Assembly (NCBI GenBank): GCA_009103225.1
Contig: RHPI01002491.1
Coordinates: forward strand, 62,001 to 126,000
Direction of reading: 5' to 3'
Length of the DNA stretch: 64,000 nt
Source: Chlorokybus atmophyticus
Taxonomy: Eukaryota; Plantae; Mesostigma and Chlorokybus algae
The notes under the pieces are model-generated. The model saw only the letters and a list, made by a program, of their open reading frames with translations, did not search any database and was not told the DNA's origin. Below, piece by piece: positions 3,110 to 64,000 of the stretch. The translations under genes and the position numbers were made by a program. Position 1 is the stretch's first letter, and each line of letters opens with the position of its first letter.

Positions 3110-4779
3110 TCAATTGATAGGTATAACAGTCACCAAGGGATGCGCGCTCTGCTCCACGCCAGTCGCCATATCAACGCGCATGGTTATGAACCTGCGCTGC
3201 TGATTGTTGACATTGACATGCAGGGCGGCGCGCACAGCAGGCGCGGCTGCCGCCTGTGTTGCTGTCCCCTGCCGCTGCTCCATGCAGTTCCAGCGCCAGC
3301 GGAAATCCAGCTGCTGGCCCTTCTCGACCACGCAGCCCATGCCATCCTGCGTAGCCATCGCCACGCGGTGCAGAAGGCAGGTAACCGACCCGTCAAGATG
3401 GATGGCGTGAAGCATGACCTCCATGTTGGACTGCGCGCCTCCTGCTTTGCAATGCTGCTCGATCTTTGGGTCCAGTGCGGCTGTCTCCGGCATCATGACC
3501 TCTGCCTGGCCGTTCGTGAACTTGCACAGCACAACGCAGTTCTGGTAAATGACGGTGAGCAGCATGGAGGTTGCCAAGACCTGATTCAGGCCTGTTGCGG
3601 CATCATCAGCACGAGCTGGGCTTATCAGCCTGCCGAACAGCTGCTTTGACGTAGCTGTAACTGCTGGCCGATCCTGCGTGCACACCACGCCTCAGACAGT
3701 CCGCCCGTGCCAGGAACAAAGACGCACAGCATTACACATTGTGCTTTCAGGAATTGCATGTATGTATCCTAGACACAATTCTGCAAGCATATCAGTAGTC
3801 TGCTTGTTGGCAACACGAGAGATTTGAGTAGAGCTTGCAACAACAAACAGCATGATGACCAGTGCAACGCAACTGCAAATGCAAAGCATACGCTCAACAA
3901 GCGTGCAAACACCGGCTTCAGATGAGTTCACATTGCAACTGCTTGATGCAGAGCAGCTTTTTATGTGCTATGCACAAAGAACCCATTGTTGTGCTGTGCC
4001 ATTACTGTACAGCATGACGTGCTGCCACCAGCATTGCTGGTACCAGCACTGTTATGCTGTGCAGCATTATTGACCGTCAGCACAAGTAGCCTGCACCTTA
4101 GAAACACGAGCACTGTGAGTGACGCAGCAACTAGCATGTTGGGGCATGCGCTCAACAAGCACTTACGTCGGCGTCTGTTGAGTTTAGTTTGTGATAGCAA
4201 GTCATTGATGCAGCTTTAGGTGTGCTATGCACGAAGCACCCACTGTGTGCCAATACTGCACAGCATAGCATTGCTGCCACCAGCAATGCTGATGGCAGCA
4301 TTGATCAACATATGCAATAAGGTCCCCCCCTCACATCAAACGCCATACGCTTTCCCCGGCTTATTTGCTGTCGGTGCACCCAAGCTGCGAATTGCAGCCC
4401 ACCAGCGCTCACCATGCAGCAACACACATCTTGTGCTGCTCAGAACGCAGCACAAGATGTCTGACAAATGTCAGCGAACATATCACATCAAAGCGACTCT
4501 CTCACTCACCTTCAGGAAAGCAGGCCATCGCTGCTCCAGCAAGGGCTTCCACAGCTCCTCCCCTGTGGCGGCGCGGTTCCACGCCCGAGAGACGCACGCA
4601 GCGCGGGCGAGGCTGCCGGCATCTAAGCGGGAGAACACGGCCGACAACAGCTCCTCAAACAGCACATTATCGTCGTCGACGGTAGTGCCTACGATATACT
4701 GTTCAACATCGTCCACCTCCATTGCCGCCGCCATACCAGCCGCCGCCGCCGCCGCCGCAGGAGCACGCCAATTGTGCAA
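3110..4779 (-). CDS. F-box protein paralog B (multi-exon)
   Basis: Exon 1 (ATG 4779 or 4734 to AAG|gtgagt at 4510) encodes LFEELLSAVFSRLDAGSLARAACVSRAWNRAATGEELWKPLLEQRWP. A large open exon starts at 3673 (cacgcag|GAT) and runs to a stop at 3110. Any middle exon and the true 3' end are uncertain. Confidence 0.75.
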
Positions 4780-5468: not shown

Positions 5469-7413
5469 ATGAACGGGGTGATGGTGGTGTCGCTGAGGGG
5501 CGGGGCCTGCCTGTTCAGCAAGGCTCATAAGCCCAACTTTGGGCTGCCGTCAGGAGGAGGGCGGCGCGGAGAGGCGGGCGCAACAGCAGGTAGCAGCGAG
5601 CAGCAGGAGGATGATAAGGCGCCGGCTGCCCTGAACCCGGCTCTGGATGCTATGGGTCTCAGCGGGCTGCTGTATGCTCTCAGCTTGCATGCCGCAGAAG
5701 CCATTGTCGACGACGATGTCGCAGAGCAGCATGCGGATCAGGCGTCATCCTTGGGACCACCTGTGACAGGTGCGGTGCATTGTGTGGTACAGCGCAGTGG
5801 CTGTCGTGGGCAAGCAGTGGCATGCTGGGCTAGCGCGTTGTAGCAAAAACACCAATGAGTCCCCATTTTTCCACATTTCCTCTCATACCATCACAGGATC
5901 CTCCAGTGTTGTCGAGGTGGTTGCTTCGGCCCTCATTGTGCACGTGTGAACGCCAGCCTCATACTGTATACTTCTCGCAGGTGCGGCGATTCAGCGATGG
6001 CACTGCGGAGAGGCTGTCCTTCACATGCGTGCCGATGTTCCTGCTGGGGTCATAGCAGTCATCATTGCTGACGCAACTGTCAGCTCTGTGGTTGCCAACT
6101 TCATTGTGGAGCAGGTGCTGAGAACGTAAGTCATGCTTGCCTGAGCACCCCCATTGTTATCATGTGGGGGATGGAAAGCTGATGAATTGGGACTTGGAAG
6201 CTGCAGCCATTTGTATTTCTAACCCGTGCATGCAGGTTCTGTAACAAGTTTGGAAAGGTGCTGACGAAGTTGACTGTCAGTCGAGCGTTCAGTGGTTTTA
6301 CAACTGCACTTCTACGCGTGTATCAACAGGTATCTTTTTGCACATGACATGCAGGCATCACATGTTGAAATCTGTGTCTTGCCAAACAGAACACCAAACG
6401 TTGCGTGATTTGCAGGTCCCGGAGCACTTGATGGGTTCTCTCGTTGAAAGATTAGGGCCTGACACTTCGTGGATGTACGTTGCACATTCCTCGAGCTTTT
6501 CACATGGATTGGACCGCCAGCAAGGTGCTGCAGATGGTGCAGCTAGTCTGGTGAACTCTCGTGCATTCTCAAGACCCAGCAGGTAACTTGCATACTTTAT
6601 TATAGCAGTTGCCTGGCACCAGTCTCAACAGCTGCCAGGCTCACAACTACTTCGCCATTGTTGCAGGTACAAGTCTCAACCAACACCATTTCGCAACCCA
6701 GCGCGTAGACGGTGGCACATGACAGCAGAAACAGAGGAAGTGACACATTCTTGGCGCGAGGTGCTCTGCTCTGTCTCAGTCACCCTTGCCAACGTGGCGC
6801 ATCTTGTCAATCCACAGCATATGTACGCTGTGCACAGCAGCGGCTTGCTAAAGCACCTTATTGCAGGTTGGAATGTTTCAGTACTTTCATCGTCAGCCCA
6901 AACCTGCCAAGGCAGCTGCCGTGCCTTTCGACAGTGGGGTACTGGACAGTCTGCTAAGTACTATACACAATGCTGCGGAGGTGCTTGCTGCTTCTGGCAA
7001 CACACCAGACTCGTTGCACTCGTTAGAGATCTGCATCCATCTGCCTGCATCTCAGGTAAGACCACAGCAATCCGCACTTGCATGCTGGATTGCACACAAT
7101 TGCACATTGTGTTTTGCGCATGGATGTAATGACTGGCGTAGTATTTGATTGTGTCGTGTTGCCACAGTCAGCGCGCACTACGGTGGACAATCCTGCCGAG
7201 CAAGTGCAGCTGCTGGTCCAGCGGCAGGGTGCCTTCTTGCTTGCAATGCCCTTGCTTGGCAGCGGCATTGGAGGAATCGGCCCAGTGCTCTGGCATGAAC
7301 TCTGTCACGATATCACACAGCTGCGCGTCTATTGCGAGTTTCTGGCACAAGTTGTACCGGTATCTGATGCCCCTCTCAACTTGTTCCATCAGTCAGCTTT
7401 GGCGCAGACATGA
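5469..7413 (+). CDS. Uncharacterised protein with a probable N-terminal longin-like fold (7 exons)
   Basis: Six GT-AG introns join in frame: MNGVMVVSLRGGACLFSK...MGLSGLLYAL...GAAIQRWHCGEAVLHMRADVPAGVIAVIIADATVSSVVANFIVEQVLRTFCNKFG...SALAQT*. The longin call is inferred from secondary-structure pattern only. Confidence 0.65.
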
Positions 7414-15000: not shown

Positions 15001-16267
15001 GCCTGCTTCGTCCAGCACACGCTGCACACACATACCAGCCATGTTTAAACAAGGACAACAAACACTGTATAGGTTGTTACCGTCACAGTTTGTTCACCTT
15101 TGTTGAGTTGGCATTGTGCATTGCAAACACCACTGTCTGTGACAAAGTGGTGGCGAACAGGTGCACAGAGCCTGATTCAAAGCGGAAGGCAAGATTCGTC
15201 ACTGCCATTTCAGTAGCATCATCTGTTTCAGCTGCCGGCACGGTCAAATGGCTTCGCACAACACGCTCTCGCACGAAGTCCCCCCGAATCACATAAACCG
15301 CACCAGATCGCAGTCCCAAAGCAACACTCAAGTTTGGGAATGCCTCTTCGTAGATTGAGCAGCATGTCACCTGCGCAGCGCGAAGCAAAGCAAATTAAGC
15401 ATAGCGCAGACAGCGATGTACATTGTGATGTTGGTGCTTGCCATGGCCTCACTCACCTTGGAAACAGGAAACTTGCCGGAAAAGAGCGTCACTGTGCGCA
15501 TGCATGAGGGGGCAGTCTTCGGTTGGGCAGGATCGCGAGGCACTTTCTCAAAGTCCCACAGCTTTATGCATGTTGAAGCAGCTGCACCGGCAGCAGGCTC
15601 ATCCTCCCCAACAGTGACCAGAATGTTTTTTGCCTAACACAATGCCCCAGGTTAGACTCTGGACGCTCTAAGTATTAGTATGCATGAAACAGTAGCTTGT
15701 CCATCGCCGTGCCTTCAGTTGCTGAACATGCAGCACATTCGTGCCATGTGCAGGATAGGAAGCAATCAGCCGGAAATTGCGGTCGGCGACGTGCACTCCA
15801 CCGTCCGATGTACCCACTGCCAGCTGGCCCCGCCCACTCGTGCTGCATGTCACGTCTGATTGCTGAAGCTCAGCAGGCAACTCCTGAACCTGCCAAGATC
15901 CACGTTAACAAACACTGGACTTGCCCTACAAGCACCGTTGATGCGGACTTGTTGGCTCCCTTCAGTCACAACACAGTTTCGCTTGCTGAAAGCATTCAAG
16001 CAACAGGCAGCATTCGCTTTCCTCCGGCATGCCTAGATGCTTTCTGCAAGCGAACTATTGTTGAATTGCTTGGCAAACATAGCTGTCTGACATGGGGCGA
16101 CTGACTGGCATGGCATTGCGTAGCTGCCGCTGCTGTGCCATCAAGTCAGGCGTTTGAAAGCAGCACGTTTAAGTTGAAAAGTGACAACCTACAGCAGCTT
16201 TACCAACTAGTTGTGCGCCCCTCACCTGCGTGCGGTCAAAGAACTGGAAGGTGCGCCACTTGTACAT
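12067..16267 (-). CDS. VPS11: Vacuolar protein sorting 11 (HOPS/CORVET class C core subunit)
   Basis: Starts MYKWRTFQFFD (16267). Contains ILVTVGEDE, YDLKNKLIA, KYGDHLYEKQDYDGAMAQYLRTIGWLEPSYVIRKFLDAQRIHNLTLYLE, clathrin-repeat-like helices, and a C-terminal RING (CGAALDLPAVHFLCMHSYHQRCLGDNERECPKC). About 15 exons. Confidence 0.97.
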
Positions 16268-16523
16268 CTCTCCTTTCACGCAACCCTCTCCGCCTCTATC
16301 TCCTCAAACTCCTGCCCATGCAATCAAGTGTACCCCGCAACGTGCCGCCGCTGCCCACGCCAACGATGGCAGCAATGTCCCCCTAGGGTGCCGCCTGACC
16401 TGGATACCGTCATACTTTACGGGCTTACTATAAGCATGGTCTCTCTGCCTTGTAACAAGCTTAACATGAATGTGTTGTACATAACAAGGAGAGTGGACAC
16501 CAAGCGGTGGCATACGTGGCGCA

Positions 16524-18145
16524 ATGGCCTCCGCTATGCCGGCAGCGGCGGTAGTCGCCTTCTCCCCCGTGTGGAGGAGGCCGTCGTCGGTGGTGTGCGG
16601 CAGGTTGGTTACAGGGAGGGTTTTCCCTCAGTCAGGCACGTCAGTCCCAGCCGGAAAGTGCGTTCTTGGCGCTCGCGGGCTGGCCTGGAAGCCTGCTGTG
16701 AGCGGGTCACAGCGGTCCAGCATGGGCCAGAGGCAGTCAGCCATGGCGGGGTTGTCCACTGCAGTATCATACGAAGAAGAGATTGCACAGGTGTGTATGT
16801 GTATCTGATGTGGTTTCAAACTTGTCCTTGTTAGTGCACGAAAGTGTTTGCACAGAACTGCTGCACATGCACGCGCTTTGTGCATGCACAGAGACGTGTC
16901 ATGTGTACAGGTGATGCCTGACTTGGCAAACGTCTCCGTTTACCGGCCTGATGGATCGACAGTTCGTGTTGGAGAGCTTTGGGACCAGCAGAAGGTGATT
17001 GCTAGTATACATCAACTCAACCTTTGCCAGCCTCTTGCATGTTGCAGTGTAGCATGCAGCGTCAGCTGACAGTCATGCATGTACTCTTTGTGCAGGAAAA
17101 AGTGGTGTTTGCACCTTTGCGCCATTTTGGATGACGTAAGCAGCTGGCCGCAGTGGTCGAAATAAAGTAGCATGTGCTCGGTGTCGTGGTTATGCTCATT
17201 TGTGCGTCTGTCCTTCCAGCCTTCTGCTGGGAGCTGGCATCATCTCTTCTGAAGGTCAAGCCTTTGTTGGATGACGCCGGCGTCAAGCTGGTGGTTCTGA
17301 GCGTGGGCAAGCCAGAATCTGCCGTCACATTCTGCGAGCGGGTATGCGCTTCTTTATCTCTGCATACTCCTTCTGCACTGCACTGAGTGTCTGAGTGGCC
17401 TGCTTGAAGCGAGACTGGCATGGTTGTACTTCGAAGCATTGCAGAGCATCAGACTTCCCAGTCATAGCTGCAGTGTGCGATGTGTAAATGGCACTGGTTG
17501 GCTCAGGTCTGAAGCTAACAGTCCTTCTGGTAGGTACCATTCCCTACGGAGCACCTCTATGCAGACCCCGACAAGAGTGTGTATGATACGCTGAAGTTGT
17601 ATCGCTCACTAGGTCGGACGTTTGCAAACCCAGCAACGGTATGTCCCACACTTTGCGCGGCATGCATCTGGTTTAGTAGCAGCTGTTGCCTCTCGTCTGA
17701 GTGTTTGGCTGACATTTGTTACCTGCCAGCCAAAAGCGCTGCTGCAACGCGGTTTGAAGGCTGTTAGCGAAGCAGCAAAGAACTACACTTTGATCATGCC
17801 TGCGCAAAGAGATGACGCTTTCCAGCAGGTAACTTTCGCATGTGTGTGCTAAACAAAAAGGCATGTTGTACATGCTTGGACAAGCAGATCGAGCAGAGGG
17901 AAGCTAGCACAAAGCACGTATTGACTGCCTCGTCACTTTCTGCTGTACGCGTCGGCTGTGATTTACATATGGTGCGGCATTGTGATCCTGACGTTTGTGT
18001 CTGGCAGGGAGGCATGTTTATCTTTGAGGGGCAGAAAGTTCTCTTTGCGCACCGTGACGAAGGCACTGCAGACCATGCAAAGATGAAGGACATCCTGACA
18101 TACTGCTGCGGTGCCGAAACATACTCAAGGTCCCCTGTAAAGTAG
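16524..18145 (+). CDS. SELENOU: Selenoprotein U / PRXL2A-AAED1-like peroxiredoxin-fold protein with probable chloroplast transit peptide; Sec codon at 17132-17134
   Basis: Exons join as EKVVFAPLRHFG-TGA-C|CC TTC TGC TGG GAG CTG GCA = RHFG-U-PFCWELA. Later exons give HLYADPD...QQGGMFIF...FAHRDEGTADHA (AhpC-TSA_2 family). The N-terminus is Ser/Ala/Arg-rich and poor in acidic residues. Confidence 0.93.
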
Positions 18146-18211
18146 AAGTAGTAGTTGTAATTGCTTGTTGGTGCTGTGAGTCGGGCCAAGTTTGTCTCTC
18201 AGCATGACATC

Positions 18212-18277
18212 ATCAGCGCCTCCGTGACGCAGCTGTTGCCAAAGCTAGAAGTGCAGCAGCTGCCGAGCAAGGACCTG
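18212..18277 (+). promoter_or_regulatory. Eukaryotic SECIS element (type II-like) in the SELENOU 3'UTR
   Basis: G-UGAC (18224-18228), 11-bp helix GCAGCUGUUGC/GCAGCAGCUGC (18229-18239 / 18253-18263), apical loop CAAAGCUAGAAGU, then CGAG (18264-18267). It lies about 80 nt after the stop. Confidence 0.9.
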
Positions 18278-19780
18278 CCCAGTCCTGCGCTTGATGTTGT
18301 GTTGGTGACAGTTGGCTCCGTTGTAGCTGGCACAGATTGGCATAGTCATGACATTGGCGGTATTAGCGCTGTCAAGAATGACTGCCTTATGTTTAAGGGG
18401 TTGTCCGCAGACATTTGTCCAGTGATCAAGCGTGTTGAACCTTTCGCAGCAAAGCTCACATCATCAGCTTTACTGCAATCGATTATAGCAATGGTTTACA
18501 TCCAGACTCAATGTGATGCATGCACCCCTATTGACTGTATTCACATGCAGGGCACTGTTTGCCTCAGGCAATGCGAGGTAAGTGTTGAGATGGGATGCCT
18601 GCCTGCCTTCGGTTATGGTGAGAAAATATTATGTTGGTCCGTCATTCTCCATGATGCGTCAGTCGGGAGAGCACTTGCTGAAGGTAAATGACACAGTGTG
18701 CAGTACCCATACAAAGGCAGTGTGCAATACACGTGCTGTTGTTTGTGTTGTGTACTCGGTTGCTGCATGCTTCCTTCACAATTTCTCATATTGGTCTTGT
18801 CGCCTGTGGCTTGTTAATGACTTGGCCTGTGCTTGTGTGATTGCGGACTGCTTGGTTTGCACATGCAGGCATTTCGCATTCGTCAGCTTGACACAATGTG
18901 TTTGCATATGTGGGCAAGGTAATTCACACACCACTAGCTATGCGGCCCAGTCTTCAGGTTCCGTTGCCTGGAGCTCTTTCAAAACGCGCTGCAATGTGTG
19001 TTGTCTGCATGGGTTGCATGCTGAAGTGTACCTGTATGCCAGCGCGCCTGCATCATGCAAGTTACTCAAAGCCAAAAGTACAAATTCAGTAACGCAGGAG
19101 TGTTCTACAATGCAAAGCACCAGCTACCATCCTGCGTGCGCGTAATGCAAGGTCAACGTGTCCTACAGTGTGGTCGCTAGCCGCCAATCCCCCAGCAGCA
19201 GTGTGACCATGACGGTCTGTGCCACAGGTCTAAGCACGGTCTGAGCACGGCCCAGCAGCTGTGTCGTATAAGCAGTGATAGGCGGCGGCGGCGGCGGTGG
19301 TGAATTGGCTGCTGCGCTACCCTTTCACAAACAGGCCAAGAACCTGGCAACCCTGGTCTTCACCTTTAGCGCCCGTGCGGCTGTTCTCAGGTTCGGGCAG
19401 AGCTCAGCGCTGTGCAACCTTTGAAGTTGCGAGCAAAGCTTGTGGCGTCTGTCTGTCTGTCTGTCTGTGTGTCTGTGTGTCTGGCTTGGCTTGGAACCAG
19501 ACAAAGTTGGATGCGCATGGGTGGAAATCGTTGCGTTGCCTGGCGTCATGCGTTCCTCGAATTGCTGTGTTGTGTTATATTGTGCTTACATTGTGTGGCA
19601 TCATGCATACTCCGGCTTTATGCCACGCACACAAGGCTTGGCATTGCGCAGCTTGTTGCTTACCAACTGAAAGCATGCAGCTAAGCCTTCAGTTAGTTGT
19701 GTATGCTGTCAGGTATGCTTGCTCGCCGTTAATCGGTTTTACGCTCACTGTTCTCTCGCTTCGCTGCACGGCATGCAGGA

Positions 19781-21501
19781 ATGCGGTTGGTGTCCTACAA
19801 CGTCGCTTCCTGGCCGCCTCTCAGCAAGGAACTGTGCTTCCGTTTTGGCTCGCTGGACGGCTTTTTCGAGGACTATTTGCAGGCCGACATTGTCTGCCTC
19901 CAGGTGACCAGCACTGAACGGTGTTCAAGTGTTTTGTGTGACAACCCCAATCAATGTATGCACAACACCACACCATGCCATACGCACAACAGCACCATCT
20001 CAAGCAGCCAGTTCACGTTGATAGGAGGTGAAGCTGCAGGAGGAAAACTTGGATCGGGCGCTGGCGTGTGTGCCAGGTTACGAGTCCTTTTGGGCCTTCA
20101 GTCAAGTAAAGCGCGGGTACAGTGGTGCGGTTTTGCTGCTGCTGTTGCATGCATGTGTCTGCAATGTGCAATCTGCTCTCTTTGCAACAAAGATTGCTTG
20201 CTTGGCGACTCACATGCCTTCGCTTGTTCAGGTGTCACAACGTATGTGAAGGACAAGTACTCACCGGTTGACGCTCGCGTGGATTGTTTGGACTCCGAGG
20301 ATGAAGAGTTACAGAATGAGGGCCGCTTGGTGCTCACCGACCATGGCACCTTTGTTCTCATCAATTGCTACGTGCCAAATGCTGGTCCAGCGCCCACCAG
20401 GCCACGACTGCGACAGAAGACTGCTTTCCTTCGTGCTTTGCATGAGATGGGTGAGTTATCTGATACAAGATGGATAGCCTTGAAGCCTGTATCAAGTGTT
20501 GCTCTGTGTAGCTTTGCGCTTGGAAGGTGAAGGGCGCAATATCGTGATTGCCGGCGACCTCAATGTTGCGCATCGACAAGTAGACCTGCACCCAGGTTTC
20601 CACTTGGAAGCCATATATTGCGAAGGTAGTATTCGGCATGCGCCCAGTTGTCAGTGAGTGTAACTGAGTCCATTTGGGTTGAACCTGCTTGTGCCATTGT
20701 GCAGAGGAGCTGCAGGCGATGAACATGCTATGCACAGACTTTGTGGACTGCTTTCGGCGGTTTCATCCTGACAAGGTTGATGCGTACACCGTTTGGGACC
20801 AGCGCAAGAATTACCGTCTTAGCAATCGAGGGCTCAGGTAGGAGCTGTGCGTCGCATCATGTTCATGTGCTCGCATGCTCACGCCATGGTCATGCAGGCT
20901 GGATTATTTTCTGTGTAGCAAGAATCTGGTGGAGAACGTCACTGCCTGTGACATCATGGACACATCGGCAAGGTGGAGCGACCATGTTGCCATCACGCTG
21001 GATTTGCGGCCGCAGCAGGCACCTCCACCGCACTCACCGGCGGCCTTGTCATCGAGGCGGATGAAGCGGTTTCAGGCGACCTCAGCACAGCAATGCATCG
21101 CCGCCATGTTCGGTGGCGCTGCGCGCAAAGGCTCGCCAACAACAGGGCGCAAGAAACGCCCTGCCGATGCGGGTAATGGTGAGGACACCTTGGAACCCAC
21201 CGCGGCCTCTGAGATGATGAAGAGGCCGAAGACTGAGAGCGACGTGGCATGCGATGGCAAGGAGCAGTCTGCGCACATTGCATCCTCTGATGTACGCTCT
21301 CATGAGCAGCAGGAGGTAGATAAGGAAGTTCTCAAAGCTGAGGAGAGTTTTCTGGAAGCAGCAAGCGCCGACAACCAAGGTGCGCTTGAAACAAGCCCTG
21401 CACCTGCGCACACCTCAGGCCCCGGTAGCAAGCAATACAAGTCCGCCAGTAAGCAGCTGAATCTGCAGGCGTTCTTCAAGTCTGTTGATAAGGGTGCTTG
21501 A
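19781..21501 (+). CDS. APE2: ExoIII-family AP endonuclease, APE2-like (6 exons)
   Basis: Motifs MRLVSYNV, ADIVCLQEVKL, GYSGV, EGR, NCYVPN, IAGDLNVAH, YTVWDQRKNYRLSNRGLRLDYFL and WSDHVAI. C-terminal PIP-box-like QLNLQAFF. Confidence 0.88.
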
Positions 21502-40627: not shown

Positions 40628-41402
40628 GCAACGGCTAACAGTAGGTGAGCTTGGTTGCTGTCTGACATTGTACTACGCGCAACACCGCATGCCATCTAAC
40701 CACCCTCCTTGCCTTAGGGCGGCCAGGCCAGGCCAGGCTAGGCCAAACCAGGCCAGGCGGCGGCAGCGGCGGCGAAGAAGGAACGGCGGCGGCGGAGCTG
40801 GAGCGGGCGGTGCAGGAACCGCAGCTCAGTACAAGGGTAGTACTAGCAGTAGTACCTAACGTAGTAGTAGCAGTAGTGGTAGTGATAGCAGTAGTGGTAG
40901 TCTAGTTGTACTAGCAGTAGTAGTAGTAGCTCAGTATATGACATTGTAATTTATTTTTTTTTCCCTTATTTGTCATGCATTCTTGCACAGCTGATGACGA
41001 CAATCACGTGTGACACCAAATCACGATTGAGCGGTACCAGCAGGTACCTTTTAAGGTACACATTATTTAAGGTACACATTATTAACCGTATGTACCTTAA
41101 GGTACCTGACAATTTCGCTCAGTTAGCGTACAGTTGCCGGTACCTAACCAATAGATATCGGTCAATTACCTGCTAGTTAGGTCAAATCCCCTTTGCTTAA
41201 CTGTTGAGTACCTGACAGGTACCTATTGATTAGGGTCACTCCCTTTATGCGGACGGCCGCCAACCAATGGAGACGGCCGTTATGCTCAGGTCCCTGTATC
41301 GAGGTCGCCGGTAGACTAAACGTCGACAGTCTAAATGAGTATCCTCAGGTGCACGGCCGTTGCCAATGTTCAGTCGGCCGGCAGGGGAAATACTTTGCGA
41401 CG
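39821..41402. mobile_element. Non-autonomous DNA transposon, 1582 bp, TIR CGTCGCAAA/TTTGCGACG, 2-bp TSD AA, inserted in the integrase of element C
   Basis: Removing the insert and one AA restores EFAINNA*QESVQETPFF. Subterminal ACGGCCG and GGTACC motif arrays. No transposase ORF. Confidence 0.85.
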
Positions 41403-42556
41403 AATGCATAGCAAGAGAGCGTGCAGGAAACTCCGTTTTTTTAAAAACTACGGAGTGCATCCACAAAGTCCTGCGAGTATTAGGTTGCCAGCTAACGACT
41501 TGACTTGCGTGCCTGCAGCGCGCGAGATGGCTGCGGCCATGCAAGACAATTTAGCATTGGCAAAGGATTGTCTGCGCGCAGCGCAAGACAGGCAGAAAGA
41601 TCAAGCTGATAAGCATCGTAGGCAGGCTGACTATGATGTGGGCAATTCGGTGTTTTTGAGCACTAAAAACATATCCATCAAGGGAGTGGGTACCCGAAAA
41701 GTTTTCCCTCGCTGGATAGGCCCCTTTAAAATAGCTGATCTGGTCGCGTATCGTTTGGAGTTACCACATTCGATACGTATACATAATGTGTTTCATATGA
41801 GTGTCCTGAAACCGTACCGTTCAGACGGTCGGGTTCAACCTCCTCCACCCCCAGTCGCAGTGGACGGCGATAATACTTTCAAGTATGAGGTGGAAACAAT
41901 CATGAGTCACCGTAAGCCCCGACGCGGACGCGCGCCGACTTACTTGGTGAAATGGAAAGGGTATGGTGTTGAACACAACACGTGGGAACCCGAAAGGAAT
42001 CTTACCAACTGCCAGGAGAATCTTCGGGCGTACTGGAGTGATGTGTTCGCACGCGGACGGTAAAAGGGTGCTGGCAGACATCTTTACCGCTTCGGCCCTG
42101 GTTCTTTTCCCACTCAGGTTTTCAGTGCTCACGGTGGGGCCTTGCTAACCCTTCAATGAGAACATTGAAACCTAAGTGGGGGGGAATGTAACGGAGTGCT
42201 ACCGCTATGCGGTTCCCCGCCCCTATTTAATTAAGAATAAGGGTCCCAACGGGATAAATACAGCCATTAAAGTCGTATTAGGGCCTTTATAGGCCCTAAT
42301 AAGGTGTTATGTTATTTACCACCGATATCGACTCGAGACACGAGTCTCAAGTCGATATCGGCCGCATGGCGGTGCTGCTAACGCAGCGACCGCTATAGCC
42401 AGGGGATCTTTCGATCCCCTGGCTGCCAGCGGCGGCGGCGGCGACGTGGCTGTGGTTGGTGGTGTTGGGGTAGGGGATTTGAGGGGGCGGTAGCACCCCC
42501 CGCCCCTCTTTACCCATCAGACGCTATAGAAGAAACGTTGTAGCTCGGTGGTTACA

Positions 42557-42829
42557 TCATTGTATGGCGCGTGTCATAGCTTGCTGGAAAGCTCTTGAAA
42601 ATAGCTACGTGGTGCAACATAGAGCGCAAAAATCGGTTGAGTGTAAAAGTTGTGGTGACTTCTAGAGTAAACAGGTGCAGAACTGGCGGGTATAAATGCC
42701 CGCGGTGTGACTTTGTTGTTATCCTTAGAAAGCCTTTTTGGATCAGCCTTGTGTGTATGCTTTGGTAGAGTTTGTGTGCTTGTGCTTGCACCAACTCCAT
42801 GCATGATCGGCAGTGTACGAATCTTAACA
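42557..42829 (+). mobile_element. Solo LTR B, right part
   Basis: Ends TTAACA (inverted to TGTTGA) and contains GCGGG-TATAAAT-GCCCGC. Followed by the imperfect TSD TTTCG, after which gag A resumes. Confidence 0.6.
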
Positions 42830-45800
42830 TTTCGCACTTACACCCGTATGGTCAAGCTGCTGAAGGACACCAACTACAAGATCCTCAGCGACGAAGCTGC
42901 CGCCGTGGTGTTTGTCAGCCAACTTGAGCCTCCACTGAACAGAACAGTGGACAACGCTCTCAACAATACCCGACCACAAGGGTATTCGCTGCTTCAAGCC
43001 CTTAAAACAGCCTAGGCAATCCATGACCGCCAGGTGTGGATGAGAGCCGTGCTGGATATGAACTCTGTCCCTCACGTGCTTCTGCCTCTGCTCCAAACCC
43101 CAGCCGACGTGACCGCAAGTCTTATCCCACCAACACACCCCGGTCTCCCGCGAAGTCGGCTCACACTGCACTACCTGCTCCTATCGTCTGCCATCGGTGT
43201 GGTCGACATGGCCATTATCAGAAGGACTGCACGGAGGAGTACGGGAACCTTGTGTGTGACCACTGCCACATGACCGGACACTTGGAGGCAGTCTGCTACC
43301 CTGCTACCCTGAGTTGAGACCCTCAGGCAGTTACGATGGCAGCATCGGTTACAACAACAACAACAACAACAACGGCAACAAGGGCAAGGAGCCAGCCAAC
43401 AACGGCTATCGGGGGAAGAACAACCCGCCGAAACTAAAACAGAACCGTCAGATTGGACCTTAAGTAGGCAACACAGCCCCCAAGGCGCCTGGTGCGGGAA
43501 ACACGGAGGTGGTTGCCGCCCTCACAGCACGGATGGATGAGGTTCAAGCGATGCTTAAAGGCAGAGAGGATGAATATCGCGCATGCTACACGGCATGGTG
43601 GGCAGCAATGGGAGTGAAGCGTAAGGAAGCCACCCCGCCTACGCGCATACAGCCACCACGGCGAACCCGAGGGGACTCCGGGCCATCCTCTAGAGGTGGA
43701 ACAGGTGGTTCTCTCGGCGAACGTGACCGCGTCAGGCAGCGTTGCTAGAACTACCGCTGGGAGGATGGACTCGTCTTCCGGCGTGTCCACATCCATGACA
43801 AGGAGATCCCGGCCCTGCACCGATGCGAGGGCATCATCGCTGCACTTCACACAGAGTTGGGGCACTTCGGCATCAAGCGCACTATCAGCTTGGTAAGTGC
43901 CCAGTTTGGTGGCATGGCATGCACACCGAGGTTCGCACCTTTGTTGCGAACTGCACGCACTGCGACCTGGTGCGTGCCAGCCTCTACACCCGCACTAGCA
44001 TGCTGCACCCACTCCATATCGCCGGCATGTTCTACCAATGGGGACTGAACATCCTTGGAGATCTAGCACCCTCAGCTCGTGGCAACAAGTACATCCTCGT
44101 CATGATCAAGCACTTTTCCAAGTGGGTTGAGCTGGTCCCCCTTTCCGACAAAAGCAGCAGAGGAACCGCTCAGGCTTTCCTCGACCATGTGCTTAGTCGT
44201 TTTGGCTCATGCGCTGAAGTCATCACCAATCAGGGAGCGGAGTTCCGCGGCGAGTTCGACACCTTGCTGGATCGCACCTACATTGACCACCGGCGCATCT
44301 CACGTGACCATCCACAGGCGGATGGGCTTGCGGAACGTACTGTCCAGACCATCAAGAAGGCCTTGCGCAAGTACGTCATCGACTACGAGAAGCGCACCTG
44401 GGATGACTGCCTCCCCTGGATAGCCTTAGGCTATCGGCTGTTCAAGCTAGCTTCCTTGCGCATGTACAGCCCGTATCATCTGTTGTTTGGCAGGGAACCC
44501 TTACTCCGCTTCCGCGCACAAAATGCGGTGGAACGCGTGCTGGACAACCTCGACAACCATGTGGCTATGTTGCACGACATGCAACAGCGCGCCTACCTGT
44601 TCGCACACGTTTTCCCCATGGCCATGGGCAATCTCCGCATCGCTCAGCACCGGGATACATTGCGCTATGAACGCCTCCGCAGTGGGTTCTACAGTCAACG
44701 CAGTTGCCGCTTCAAAGCGGGCAACTATGTCTACCGCATGAACCAAACCAAGGACACCCTTGACATCGGTGTCAAGCGTATCGTCTACAAGGTCTTAAAG
44801 GTACTCCCCTCCGGAGTGCTAGAGTCACTCGGCAACAACGGCGAGCGCCTCAAGGACAGCATGGAGAACTGTGCTCCATGTCACATGCCACACGTTGCAG
44901 GCTTCGACATCATTCAGCACCCTCGACCCAGTCGCAGCAAGCGTTGCGAGAAGTTCGGCAGTGCCGACGACGACGGACTCATGATGTTGTGCGACGGCTG
45001 CAACAACGGTATGCACTGCTACTGCCTCGACCTGACAAAGGACATTGTGCCTCTGGAGGCATATTGGTGTGAGGACTGCCATGTCCGTGGTCCTCCTCAT
45101 TCCCGATGAAGATTGCTCACTGGAGTAGGGACTTCTCCACTTCACCGGGGGGGTGGCTTGTTGACTTGCTCTTATGAGCATTATCGGCCACGCATTTTCA
45201 TCACTCAGGGCGCACAGCACAACATTGTACCACATGTCGTCAACCTCACATGTGTTTCCCCCACAAGTAGGTACAGGCAAGGGGGTATTCTTTGACTTCC
45301 ATACTGTACAGCTACACGACCAACAGTCCACAAGGCTGGCCTCATCCCCATCATGGCAATACGGTTGGGAGCGACCTGGAGACGCACATGTCCCTGCCAG
45401 GCCCGACACTACAGCTAGGGGTCTCCGCTAGCGTTAATGTTGAGGCGGGGAGAGCCAGTGACATGTACATAGCGGCAAGACAGTTTGCATTGCAGTAATT
45501 AAGCCAATCCTGCATGCAATACACAATGTGAATGCATAGCATAATGCAGCTAGCACACAAGTGGCAATGCACCACTCCCCTCTCAATGCAGTGCACATCT
45601 TGATATCCATTTAAAACATGCATACGCACATACAAGCACACACAATCATCAATCTCAGTGGGGGAATGTACATTATAAGCTGGCTATGTATAGGGTGACA
45701 GAGGCTAGGGCACCACAGCTCAGGGGCCACAGTCACAGCTGCCTAGCACATCTTTGTGCTAGGCAGCTGTAATTGTGGCCGTTGTGCTGTCATTGTGTGC

Positions 45801-54000: not shown

Positions 54001-55200
54001 CATATGCATGTGTATGTGTTAACAAGCAAGTGCATACCTTTATCAACAGTCTTGCATGTCAACACGCGTGCGTGCACGTGTGCGCGCGCACACACAGCAG
54101 GGTTGGCTGCTTGCATTGCAACCCACCCAACTCTGATGCCAGCTGCTTCTGTGTTTCACAGGACCTCTTGAAAGCCCTGTCTGACAACCCTCGATTGCTG
54201 ACCCTGGACTGTCCGTTTAACAATCAAGGGCTATGTGACAGCCCTCGATTGTCAACAATCACCGTCAGTCCCACCATTCAGCAAGGTGCGTGCAAGGCCT
54301 GTCTCGTATGCATAGCCACTGATACAGATGCACAAACGAACACATATAGTGCCATGTATACAAATCGGGCATACACTTACACTCACACACACTTGTGTGC
54401 GCACACGCGCACGCACGCATTGCAAAAGGAAAAGTCCGACTGTTCCTCACGGCATGCACGTGCGCGTGCACTTACAAGTAACTGGCAGTTGTGACAAGCA
54501 CAAGCGTGCTTGTCACAACTGCCAGTAATTTGTAAGCTTGTGCGCATGCACATTGCATACACTCACACTCACACATACGAGCGTGCGCACGCGCGCACAG
54601 TCGCACGTGCATTCTCACACACGCTCATGCGCACTTGTCATGTGCAGGCTCTGCGTGAAAGCTTGCAGTTTGTTAGAGACAGAGGTTTACTAGGCTAGGT
54701 AGGTCAGCTACTCAGCTATGACAGAGCTTTGTGAAGTGTGGTGGATGATTGTGAATGTAATATGTACATTCTGACTGCTAGTCTGCTTGTTGCATGCAAG
54801 ATATGCAATCTTTGTTGCCACAGATCGGACCGGAATTGGTCTGAAACACCCCATTATGATTTGCATTTGCTTACAAGAATGGACCAAGCTTGGTCCATGT
54901 TAACATGTAGAATTCGGACCATATATGGTCCACACACACTCACTTATGCATGGACCAACCTTGGTTCGTTTCTGCATGATAAAGTCGGACCATACATGGT
55001 CCACAAATCTCATGCATACTGGCCACCATGCCTGGTGCATCCCAAGGGACAATAGTACCATTCACGTTAAATTCGGACCATGCATGGTCCGACTGTCGAT
55101 AAAAAGCAGACCGTGCATGGTCCACCGATTTCGCTTAGCAGGGGAAAATCTTGGTCCTGCGTCACGGACCATTCATGGTCCTTGAACGTCAGTCGGTGTG
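51075..55200. mobile_element. CACTA/EnSpm-like non-autonomous element 2 with CACAC termini, 4126 bp
   Basis: 35-bp TIR with 31/35 matches (CACACGGCTTGACGTTCAAGGACCATGCATGGTCC), perfect 3-bp TSD ACT, and subterminal palindrome arrays. No transposase ORF is visible; an internal gap is present. Confidence 0.9.
53507..53636. other. Assembly gap (N run) following a poly-C tract
   Basis: Run of N. Confidence 1.
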
Positions 55201-61022: not shown

Positions 61023-64000
61023 GTCCCTTTCTGGCAGAAGTACAGCCCCTAGTAGCAAAGAGGGGGTGACTCCGAGGGTGACTCTGACCCCTTGCAGCGT
61101 CACAGGTGGACTCGAACAGCGTAAATATTGCAGCTATATTGGCGATCAGCAGGGAAATGACTCGAATTAGCGACATATGCCTTATTTACGACACGTGTCA
61201 ACTGCGTCGTTTACACGTGTTGCGGGCGCCTCGATCAGTGCGTCGTGTCGCCATTGTTGTTAACATGCGTTCTGCATTATTTTTTGTTGATTTATTGCAT
61301 TAAATAAGGAGTTATTGCATGGTTCATGATTGGCGCTTGGTAAACTGCTAAGCTAGTAAGGGTCATGCATGCAACCCTCACTACCACATATTTCACGCAC
61401 GCACTTCGTGCAGTGGGTTGGTTAGCTGGTTGGCTTAAGAAACTATACCCCCCGGCCAAATTTTGCTTGTCTTGCGTTGCTATGCACTTTAGCATGTTAG
61501 CCTATCGTTTGATCTTGCATCTTTTCTCATACCGTATGCATAACAAGCATAAAACCACAAAGATAACAAGCGCCAACACAGCCAATGGTAGTTAATAGAC
61601 TATACAATACAGTAGTGACACATACATTACCACCCACTCACTTCTGCAAATCGCTTTTGAGTTCAACCTTGTGCTACTGTGACCATAAAAGTCAACGTCA
61701 TGCGTTGATTGATATTATTGACGTTTAGGCCCAAAACACCTTATGGAGCTACAACTCTAGCCATTTTATGATTAGTTTTAGATTGCAATGTATGTGTTAC
61801 CACGATAGTTTGCAATTTATGAGGACCGTTTATTCACTGTTAAACAAGTTATACAAGCCTTATATAGTGTCTGCCTCCAATCAAGCACAGCTTTAAAAAT
61901 TGACAGTGTTTACACATGGTTTGTGCGTGGCCTGCTGTGTGAAACCAGGCTATCTTCTAACCGAGTAACACATGTTCCGTTCTATTCGAGTTTAAATGGA
62001 AGTTTGTGGTTTTTGTTTCGTCAGAAGTAATCGTAATGAAAGTTGTACAATATAATTGTTTCTGAACCTGGTCATTTTTCTACGTGCTTCGTGCAGTAAC
62101 CTTATTTTCATCGCGCAATGCATTAGAGATATTTTAATTCGCGGTGGGGGTGGAGGTAGAGCTTGCCAGCCACTACACTGACAACGAGGATTGCACATTT
62201 TTTCTCTTACAAGTAAAATTAAAAAGATAAAAACCAAAATTTTTTTAGTGATTTTGCAACTTACATTATGCGTACAAATTATTTGTCAGCATAGTTTATG
62301 ACTTAAACATTAAGCTTAACAACATCATGCACCATAATAACATGTTAAATGAACACACAATTGATGATATGAGATGACAGCTTTACACCGCAAACAACGC
62401 AATGGTCAAACGTAAGCAAGCCGTGATTACTCACTTTACACGACCTTACAGCACTTCCTTTCGTAAGCTACAGGCTGATGCGGTGTTTTCAACCTTCGAA
62501 GTTGATGTCTCTTTCGTAACAACGTCATTGTTGTACATTATTGTGAACAAATATTGTGAGATGTAATCACAGCTGTAACTTGCAAAATGGTGCAAATCGA
62601 CCACATTCTCATACACCCTATTTGCTTGCTTGCTTGCTTGTGGCCTGTTGATTGAGTTGAGTGTGCTTAGTGTGTTCCACAACTTTGTACTTAAGCGATA
62701 CATTGTCCAAAAGATTTGACATCGTCAGCATTCAATTGTGGAGTTGATGTGTGGCTAACTGCAGGTGTAGAGGTCGATCAAGCCAGGAATGCTCGTTGGG
62801 TTGCGCTCACGTGGGATGCGTGACATGCTCCTATCCGTCACCGATTACCACATTGTGTGGCGGAGTGGTTGAGCCTACCAGGTAGGCTCAATGATAGATA
62901 TCCGTCATAGACCCGCGGCTCGAGAGCACCGTTAACACCCAATGACTCCTACGCTGTCGCGGTCACGCATGATCGTCATCACGCGAACGACTTGAAACTT
63001 TCAAGTCCCCAGCTGTCCTGATCAACTGCGACCCAACCACGACTGACGACCTGTCCTAGAGCACACTGCGAGCACAGCGAAGAATCTGTGGAGCGGCGGG
63101 GTTGCCGTTAAAAGCGCCCGTTTTACGCTCCATTCACAGTGTGAGCCAGGGTTGTAAGCCAAGCTTCAATTTTCCTTTTGTTTGTTTGACTGCTATCGAG
63201 TCAAGTCAAGCAGCAGTCCAGTTGTCAAGCTCACAGCAGGGAAGGGCAGCGCACGCAGGCGGCGTGGTGTCAGTGGTAGTGGTGAGACTTGGAGCTGCTA
63301 GCAAGACGACAAGGAATAGGCGGCTTCTTCCGCGGGGGGGCGCAGCGGGGCGTTGTGGGGAGGGGTTGCTGGCGTCGTTGGGCGGGGCGGCCGCTTTGCC
63401 GGCCTGCGGGGCGCGCGGGTGGCCCGATCGTGTTCCGCGCGAAGCAACTGGCTGGCCACGAGGATGCTACCGTTGCCACCTTAGCCCTTGCTAGTGCGCT
63501 GCCTGCTCCGGTAAGGCTGCACGCTTGCTTGACCTGACACTGCTTCTTTGCCTTCTGCCCGCGAGCCGCAAGTGTAGCCAGTGATGTGCAGATTTGTGCT
63601 GGACAAAGCTTATCTTGGTTTCATGGCTATATGCCGCATTACATGTGCAGCTTTTCTTGTGGCATTACAGCTGGCCGCTGAACTGCCGCCCTGCGCTACA
63701 TCGCCTTGCTTAACTACTGCATGTGCATGTGCTCCGTGCGTCAGTAGCATTAGATGGTTTGGTGCGACTGCATTTGTCTGCTGGTCAAGCATATGTTGTT
63801 TGCAAAGGGCACAAGCATGTCGAGTCGTCGTTCCCTTAGCTGCACAAGCTCACAGTCCCAGCCTACTTGTCAATGTTTGTCATGCCAAAGTCGCAGGCAA
63901 GCAGTTACAGCCATAATGCACAACCATGTGCACCAGTTCAGTGTTTTCGTGGCAATAGCAGGCCTGCAGCATGCTGCAGGAGCTAGCAGTCACCTGCAAC

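Follow-up and report, generated by a model that had tools for sequence, protein, structure and literature searches.

A selenoprotein U-type gene of Chlorokybus atmophyticus with a probable selenocysteine codon that the public gene model splices around

Can an in-frame TGA codon in a seven-exon gene of the alga Chlorokybus atmophyticus encode selenocysteine (Sec) rather than the end of the protein? The question is raised by a locus on contig RHPI01002491.1 (assembly GCA_009103225.1), of which a stretch of 64,000 nucleotides (positions 62,001 to 126,000 of the forward strand; hereafter the window, whose coordinates are used below) was analyzed. The G + C content of the window is approximately 51%, compared to 50.3% reported for the Chlorokybus assembly. 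A plus-strand gene at 16524-18145 contains TGA at 17132-17134, and an original prediction made from the letters of the window had proposed that this gene codes for a hidden, probably plastid-targeted selenoprotein. The comparisons reported here assign a probability of about 0.88 to the interpretation that the gene is the C. atmophyticus member of the selenoprotein U/PRXL2 family and a functional, Sec-encoding SELENOU-type gene.

Direct reading of positions 16500-18500 resolved the gene into seven exons, with all introns bounded by GT and AG and equipped with good polypyrimidine tracts. The summed exons comprise 855 nt of coding sequence, corresponding to 284 codons plus the stop, and the TGA, a candidate Sec codon at residue 130, is the only in-frame stop before the gene end. 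Exon 1 (16524-16790) starts with ATG and contributes 89 codons, which code for an N-terminal extension resembling a transit peptide. Exon 2 (16911-16994; 28 codons), which aligns with the conserved domain start of the plant and Cyanophora homologues, ends with VSVYRPDGSTVRVGELWDQQK at the donor AAG/GTGATT. It is followed by the 40-nt exon 3 (17096-17135), which consists of the codons for EKVVFAPLRHFG, the TGA, and a single C that is the first base of a Pro codon. Intron 3 (17136-17219; GTAAGC...CCAG) is in phase 1 and begins 1 nt past the TGA. Exon 4 (17220-17341) opens with CC and continues with FCWELASS...CER; the second redox Cys lies in this exon, and the Pfam domain begins here. The rest of the protein is encoded by exon 5 (17534-17638; 35 codons), exon 6 (17730-17828; 33 codons, aligning with the homologues), and exon 7 (18008-18145), which contains a conserved C-terminal Cys-Cys pair and the TAG stop at 18143-18145. 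Since the C at 17135 and the CC from 17220 on form a Pro codon that precedes F-C-W-E-L-A, the redox site reads U130-P-F-C133 if the TGA is taken as Sec. The junction 17135/17220 and the restoration of the U-P-F-C motif by splicing are exactly as the original prediction had described them, and in the sequence around exon 3 no other GT near the TGA was found that would keep the conserved strand while avoiding the stop.

The family affiliation was assessed by searches that were run exon by exon or with public proteins as queries; the exons were never joined. Exons 4, 5, and 7 matched the Pfam family PF13911 (AhpC-TSA_2, the PRXL2/selenoprotein U fold) collinearly, at family positions 2-32 (19.2 bits), 36-65 (22.4 bits), and 95-114, respectively. 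Each of these matches is below the cut-off of 27 bits when taken singly, and their sum is 55 bits. The same family is precomputed on the public protein of this gene, P0001, which was also the best (100% identical) of the eight matches obtained with exon 4 in a phmmer search against 1.84 billion proteins. No matches were found when exons 4 and 5 were searched singly against the PDB, and a word-index protein search with exon 4 gave no candidates either, which is in keeping with the length window of that search. Membership in NF040769, a family of SelL-related redox proteins, was considered and rejected, as P0001, P0006, and P0122 scored 62-85 bits and thus less than the cut-off of 120 bits. The proposed placement in the SelU/PRXL2 family with a UxxC motif agrees with the Pfam matches as well as with the alignment and the structural relatives described below. 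Sec-containing SelU is on record for fish, birds, Ostreococcus, and diatoms (PMC2375036), and in a survey of 36 algal genomes that did not include Chlorokybus, SELENOU ranked among the four Sec proteins with the widest distribution (PMC7539508). Since selenoprotein U is thus already known to be widespread in algae, the gene would add to an established family a new member whose public annotation is faulty. It resembles other selenoproteins U in the Pfam domain, in Sec at the first position of the CxxC motif, and in a eukaryotic selenocysteine insertion sequence (SECIS) in the 3' untranslated region (UTR), but differs from them by its long N-terminal, targeting-like extension. The placement is at the level of the family rather than of the vertebrate subgroups SelU1, SelU2, and SelU3, as animal SelU1 and SelU3 sequences were not among the matches listed. 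No published SelU record was found for Chlorokybus, the species being absent from PMC7539508 and PMC6627142 reporting three selenoproteins that its text does not name.

The comparison with Cys-containing homologues places the TGA on a catalytic column. The counterparts of the exon 3 peptide in the alignment are EGVAVVALLRHFG in land plants and VIVLALMRHLG in Cyanophora. Both are followed by Cys, so that the TGA falls on the first Cys of the CxxC motif. The redox site accordingly reads C-P-C-C in plants, C-P-F-C in Cyanophora, C-V-V-C in human prostamide/prostaglandin F synthase (PGFS), and U-P-F-C in Chlorokybus. The land-plant homologue had been expected to carry Cys, and the proteins in question, which are named "thioredoxin-like protein AAED1, chloroplastic" in NCBI and UniProt, indeed do so. 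They are the closest full-length Cys relatives retrieved (approximately 40% identity over the domain in the alignment). Chlorokybus and the land plants share the sequence ...LLRHFG-x-P-x-C-W-E-L-A, an N-terminal extension, the Cys-Cys near the C-terminus, and an intron lying no more than a few bases from the redox motif, whereas the residue at the site differs (Sec versus Cys) and the plant intron lies 8 nt past the first Cys codon instead of 1 nt. On the basis of these sequence features, the Chlorokybus gene and the plant AAED1-chloroplastic proteins are likely orthologous. Land plants are not known to possess the Sec machinery.

A TGA at the same codon recurs in other algae. Loci were fetched for algal matches that lack the first Cys, and TGA was found at this position in six homologues, which come from at least five other algae and have intact downstream frames. 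The shared pattern is LRH[FL]G-TGA followed by x-[FL]-C-W-E/Q. Two tandem genes of Chlamydomonas incerta (JAEHOC010000005.1; L001) read LLRHLG-TGA-CCT, intron, FCWEQ and -TGA-GTG, intron, FCWEQ, respectively; Haematococcus lacustris (JASKMD010000018.1; L003) has LLRHLG-TGA-CCT, intron, LCWEQ; and Coccomyxa elongata (CAXVQD010000001.1; L004) has LLRHLG-TGA-CCG, intron, FCWQQ. Among the metagenome contigs, L002 shows FLRHFG-TGA-GTG-TTT-TGC without an intron, and L006-L008 show LLRHFG-TGA-CCC-TT, intron, C-TGC, with L006 being counted among the six genes. All public or automatic models of these algal genes are broken at the TGA, as they are mis-spliced, split in two, or begin just after this codon. 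In KAG2441545.1 (C. incerta) the end of the Sec exon is skipped by mis-splicing; in KAJ9517083.1 (H. lacustris) it is skipped likewise, and the model is fused to a ribosomal L24 gene; the Coccomyxa model g163 represents only the 3' half, while the 5' half is contained in an upstream model of 80 residues.

The intron beside the redox motif is located at 17136 in the window, at 3840 and 162 in L001, 3148 in L003, 2425 in L004, approximately 151 in L006, and 2689 in the Mangifera indica locus (CM021852.1; L005). Its offset from the Sec or Cys codon is +1 in Chlorokybus, +3 in C. incerta, Haematococcus, and Coccomyxa, +5 in L006, and +8 in mango, and the intron is absent from L002. The position of the Sec codon 1 nt before an intron, which the original prediction had singled out, is therefore correct for Chlorokybus but is not conserved and does not seem to be special. 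The shifting offsets could be due to intron sliding or repeated gain. The mango protein XP_044470429.1 (364 residues) seemingly fuses parts of two tandem AAED1-like copies, and the exon coding for RHFGC is present twice at this locus, approximately 14 kb apart. The Cys-Cys pair near the C-terminus (18101-18106 in exon 7; alignment columns ~348-350) appears as YCCGA in Chlorokybus, SCCVA, ACCQK, or ACCGA in chlorophytes, and ICCKV in land plants, and is absent from Cyanophora. The pair might act as a second redox-active site carried by a flexible tail.

To look for a SECIS, the sequence was scanned for (A/G)UGA...GA pairs in combination with thermodynamic folding. The top candidate is part of a hairpin at 18197-18308 (plus strand), which comprises a long helix I, the core, helix II, an apical part, and a small side hairpin (18270-18286). 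It has a folding energy of -50 kcal/mol (z = -3.6), and none of 200 shuffled sequences folded as well. In the core (18224-18267), GUGA at 18224-18227 is located opposite GA at 18265-18266. Helix II is an uninterrupted stem of 11 bp (18229-18239 with 18253-18263), and the apical part contains unpaired CAAA (18240-18243) followed by a 3-bp mini-stem. This element begins 79 nt past the TAG stop and 543 nt of mRNA past the UGA. A strict pattern (the quartet, at least nine contiguous pairs, AA not more than 4 nt from the end of a 9-13-nt arm, and GA) had a single plus-strand match in the 64-kb window, namely 18224-18267, and a single minus-strand match; for comparison, 128 kb of shuffled sequence gives 0.04 matches. 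The minus-strand match (54568-54628) lies in a GT/GC-rich simple repeat, has a 32-nt loop and no gene context, and was dismissed as probably due to chance.

Comparable SECIS hairpins were also found 45-70 nt past the stop in three relatives. The L002 element consists of GUGA, 10 bp with one bulge, CACAA, and a mini-stem (z = -3.1), that of Coccomyxa of AUGA, AAA, and a 7-bp mini-stem (z = -4.5), and that of L006 of AUGA, AA, and a 6-bp mini-stem. An unpaired G ahead of the quartet and a mini-stem are typical of green-algal SECIS elements (PMC2375036). When the orthologous elements were aligned with MAFFT, their 3' halves were not consistently aligned. A candidate at 5964-6023 of the Haematococcus locus was rejected because its fold was not supportive (z = -1.4). 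The tandem C. incerta paralogues share a block of approximately 365 nt (L001 1866-2230 and 5424-5788) that is about 97% identical within otherwise diverged 3' UTRs, and this block may hold the SECIS of these genes.

Taken together, the collinear Pfam exons, the coincidence with the Cys column, the recurrence of the TGA in six other algal genes, and the SECIS after the stop place the in-frame TGA beyond chance. Why, then, is the codon missing from the public protein? P0001, the EukProt/JGI protein of C. atmophyticus (jgi Chlat1 7537, Chrsp62S07031), was 100% identical over exons 1, 2, and 4-7 in a tblastn search on the window, which identifies the locus as the gene of this model, and exon 3 was missing. 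The protein reads ...ELWDQQK-VIAT-FCWELASS. This requires that the coding sequence extends 10 nt beyond the exon 2 donor to a GT at 17005, which is joined to the acceptor at 17220, and the resulting intron (17005-17219, plus strand) engulfs exon 3. Ten columns of the alignment, in which the homologues carry the VVALLRHFGC strand with the active site, are a gap in P0001. The expectation that automated annotation would splice around the TGA is thus borne out by the loss of exon 3 from Chrsp62S07031 and by the cut or mis-spliced models of four other algae.

Several observations count against the Sec reading and have to be weighed. The public model is an in-frame alternative that avoids the TGA by means of the GT at 17005. 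The strict SECIS pattern was composed after the candidate was known, although in accordance with the textbook SECIS consensus. No SECIS was located at the C. incerta or Haematococcus loci, and cmscan with the Rfam SECIS models (E ≤ 10) gave no match either in 15500-20500 or in the whole window. As the same search of L001-L007 (E ≤ 10) also yielded no SECIS and missed even the canonical AUGA-type elements of Coccomyxa and L006, the silence of Rfam is weak evidence. If the public model were right, exon 3 would be outside the mRNA or a decayed relic, the TGA would be untranslated, and the product would be a protein of 274 residues without the first redox residue. This is very improbable, as the skipped exon encodes a strand and LRHFG motif that hardly vary within the family, its counterpart in a structural model is predicted to be the core strand that bears the active site, and a SECIS is present after the stop of the gene. 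Moreover, the way in which the gene model fails at this TGA varies among four other algae, which points to an annotation artefact. Equally little credence is given to the possibility that a TGC or TGT codon of an ordinary Cys enzyme or fresh pseudogene was changed by an error of assembly or sequencing or by a strain-specific nonsense mutation. Such an origin needs a single base change and would match the Cys found at this site in land plants and Cyanophora, but it leaves unexplained why TGA occupies the same codon in the six homologous genes from other algae and why a well-formed SECIS, of a kind expected only 0.04 times per 128 kb, lies in the 3' UTR; in addition, the remaining reading frame and all splice sites are intact. 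The interpretation as a Sec-encoding gene is also compatible with the genetic equipment of the organism. According to PMC6627142, the Sec machinery of Chlorokybus is complete, with eEFSec, PSTK, SBP2, and SecS in the genome and SPS in the transcriptome. The 64-kb window itself contains no tRNA genes.

What kind of enzyme would be produced? In a comparison of the plant homologue with human PGFS (PRXL2B, PDB 9us9; E = 1.5e-8), LLRHFGCPCCWELA was aligned with GLRRFGCVVCRWIA, and PDB 9usa is the C44S/C47S double mutant of human PGFS, in which the same two positions as those of the redox motif are replaced. The AlphaFold model of the Vitis homologue has predicted local distance difference test (pLDDT) values of approximately 85-97 over most of the domain, whereas residues 1-60 are disordered. 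In this model, strand 97-103 precedes a helix spanning 109-127, at whose start the first Cys (108) is situated. Foldseek ranked 9usa and 9us9 first for this model, followed by Bcp/PrxQ peroxiredoxins. The location of the first Cys at the helix start and the identity of the best structural matches suggest that Sec is placed like the attacking residue of thioredoxin-fold and peroxiredoxin enzymes. Human PGFS is the best solved-structure match to the family by both sequence and fold, and its C44-x-x-C47 motif aligns with U-P-F-C, but it is a Cys enzyme of 198 residues without a presequence and about 24% identical. A prostaglandin-like substrate of the algal protein is not implied. The atypical 2-Cys peroxiredoxins Bcp and PrxQ share the peroxiredoxin-like thioredoxin fold and likewise carry their reactive residue where the corresponding helix begins, although their identity is only 11-17%.

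A plausible course of expression and catalysis can be outlined from these similarities. The seven exons would be joined in the mRNA, and the UGA of exon 3 would be recoded to Sec by the GUGA-type SECIS and the SBP2/eEFSec/tRNA-Sec machinery of the alga. The predicted product has 284 residues, including the peptide ...LRHFG-U-PFCWELASSLLK. It would adopt a peroxiredoxin-like thioredoxin fold, in which the U130-P-F-C133 redox centre marks the N-terminus of the first long helix. By analogy with C44-x-x-C47 of human PGFS and with Bcp/PrxQ, Sec could serve as the attacking residue and reduce a peroxide, an endoperoxide, or a disulfide. The oxidised enzyme would then contain a selenenylsulfide between Sec and Cys133, which might be reduced by a thioredoxin-type reductant.

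Where such an enzyme would act is less certain. The first acidic residue encoded by exon 1 is at position 84, and Ala, Ser, Val, Gly, and Arg are abundant in the exon 1 peptide. In all Archaeplastida homologues examined, including that of Cyanophora, the domain is preceded by an extension of 60-100 non-conserved residues, whereas human PGFS begins just 13 residues before the aligned region. The acid-free extension, the extensions of the homologues, and the names of the plant proteins together make import into an organelle likely, with the plastid as best guess. The acid-free N-terminal extension of 83 residues probably directs the protein to the plastid, a destination that is slightly favoured here on the composition of the extension and the nomenclature of the plant homologues. 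A genuine selenoprotein that is mitochondrial, dual-targeted, or cytosolic appears rather unlikely, but the Arg/Ser/Ala-rich, acid-free extension would fit green-algal mitochondrial presequences equally well. On the other hand, the likely land-plant orthologues carry the name "chloroplastic", every Archaeplastida homologue examined possesses the extension, and the N-terminus of the Cyanophora protein begins with MAFV. Plastid transit peptides of glaucophytes characteristically have a Phe near their start. TargetP detected no chloroplast transit peptide in any of the Ostreococcus selenoproteins (PMC8834552), which lends some weight to a location outside the plastid and at the same time makes a candidate plastid selenoprotein such as that of Chlorokybus of some interest.

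In the mRNA, 327 nt separate the UGA from the last exon junction, which lies downstream of it. According to the mammalian rule for nonsense-mediated mRNA decay (NMD), a UGA that is read as a stop upstream of the last junction renders an mRNA sensitive to this pathway. By analogy, it is plausible that the Chlorokybus mRNA is NMD-sensitive whenever its UGA is read as a stop, and because of the distance to the last junction the transcript level might follow the selenium supply via NMD.

The next plus-strand gene (19781-20530) starts approximately 1.6 kb downstream; its first exon, as judged by eye, looks like a member of the exonuclease III/AP endonuclease family. About 450 nt upstream of the ATG, a hairpin of approximately 100 nt (15964-16070) showed weak, plant miRNA-like Rfam matches (MIR173, 27.9 bits, far under the cut-off) and is possibly a small inverted-repeat element. 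A near-perfect hairpin at 54467-54540, flanked by GT/GC-rich repeats, had a MIR7125-like Rfam match (40 bits, E = 1.7e-5, under the cut-off). Retrotransposon open reading frames were found at 41335-45109, one with a chromodomain and a Tf2-type SH3 domain and another with an integrase core and a C-terminal PHD finger.

With only three selenoproteins reported for Chlorokybus in PMC6627142, the corrected gene model would add one to this species, and it is a candidate for a plastid selenoprotein. The annotation problem is wider than this locus, as the same codon also disrupts the public models of the gene in Chlamydomonas incerta, Haematococcus lacustris, and Coccomyxa elongata. The Sec form of algae and the Cys form of land-plant chloroplasts constitute a clean pair for studying what the loss of Sec cost or changed during the move to land. 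Tentatively, and with odds slightly short of even, the Chlorokybus gene and its chlorophyte counterparts may represent a lineage of plastid-imported selenoenzymes in which the AAED1-like protein of land-plant chloroplasts had its direct, Sec-using ancestor. If so, the plastid redox network of early streptophytes would have depended on selenium, and Sec would have been replaced by Cys in place during the move to land.

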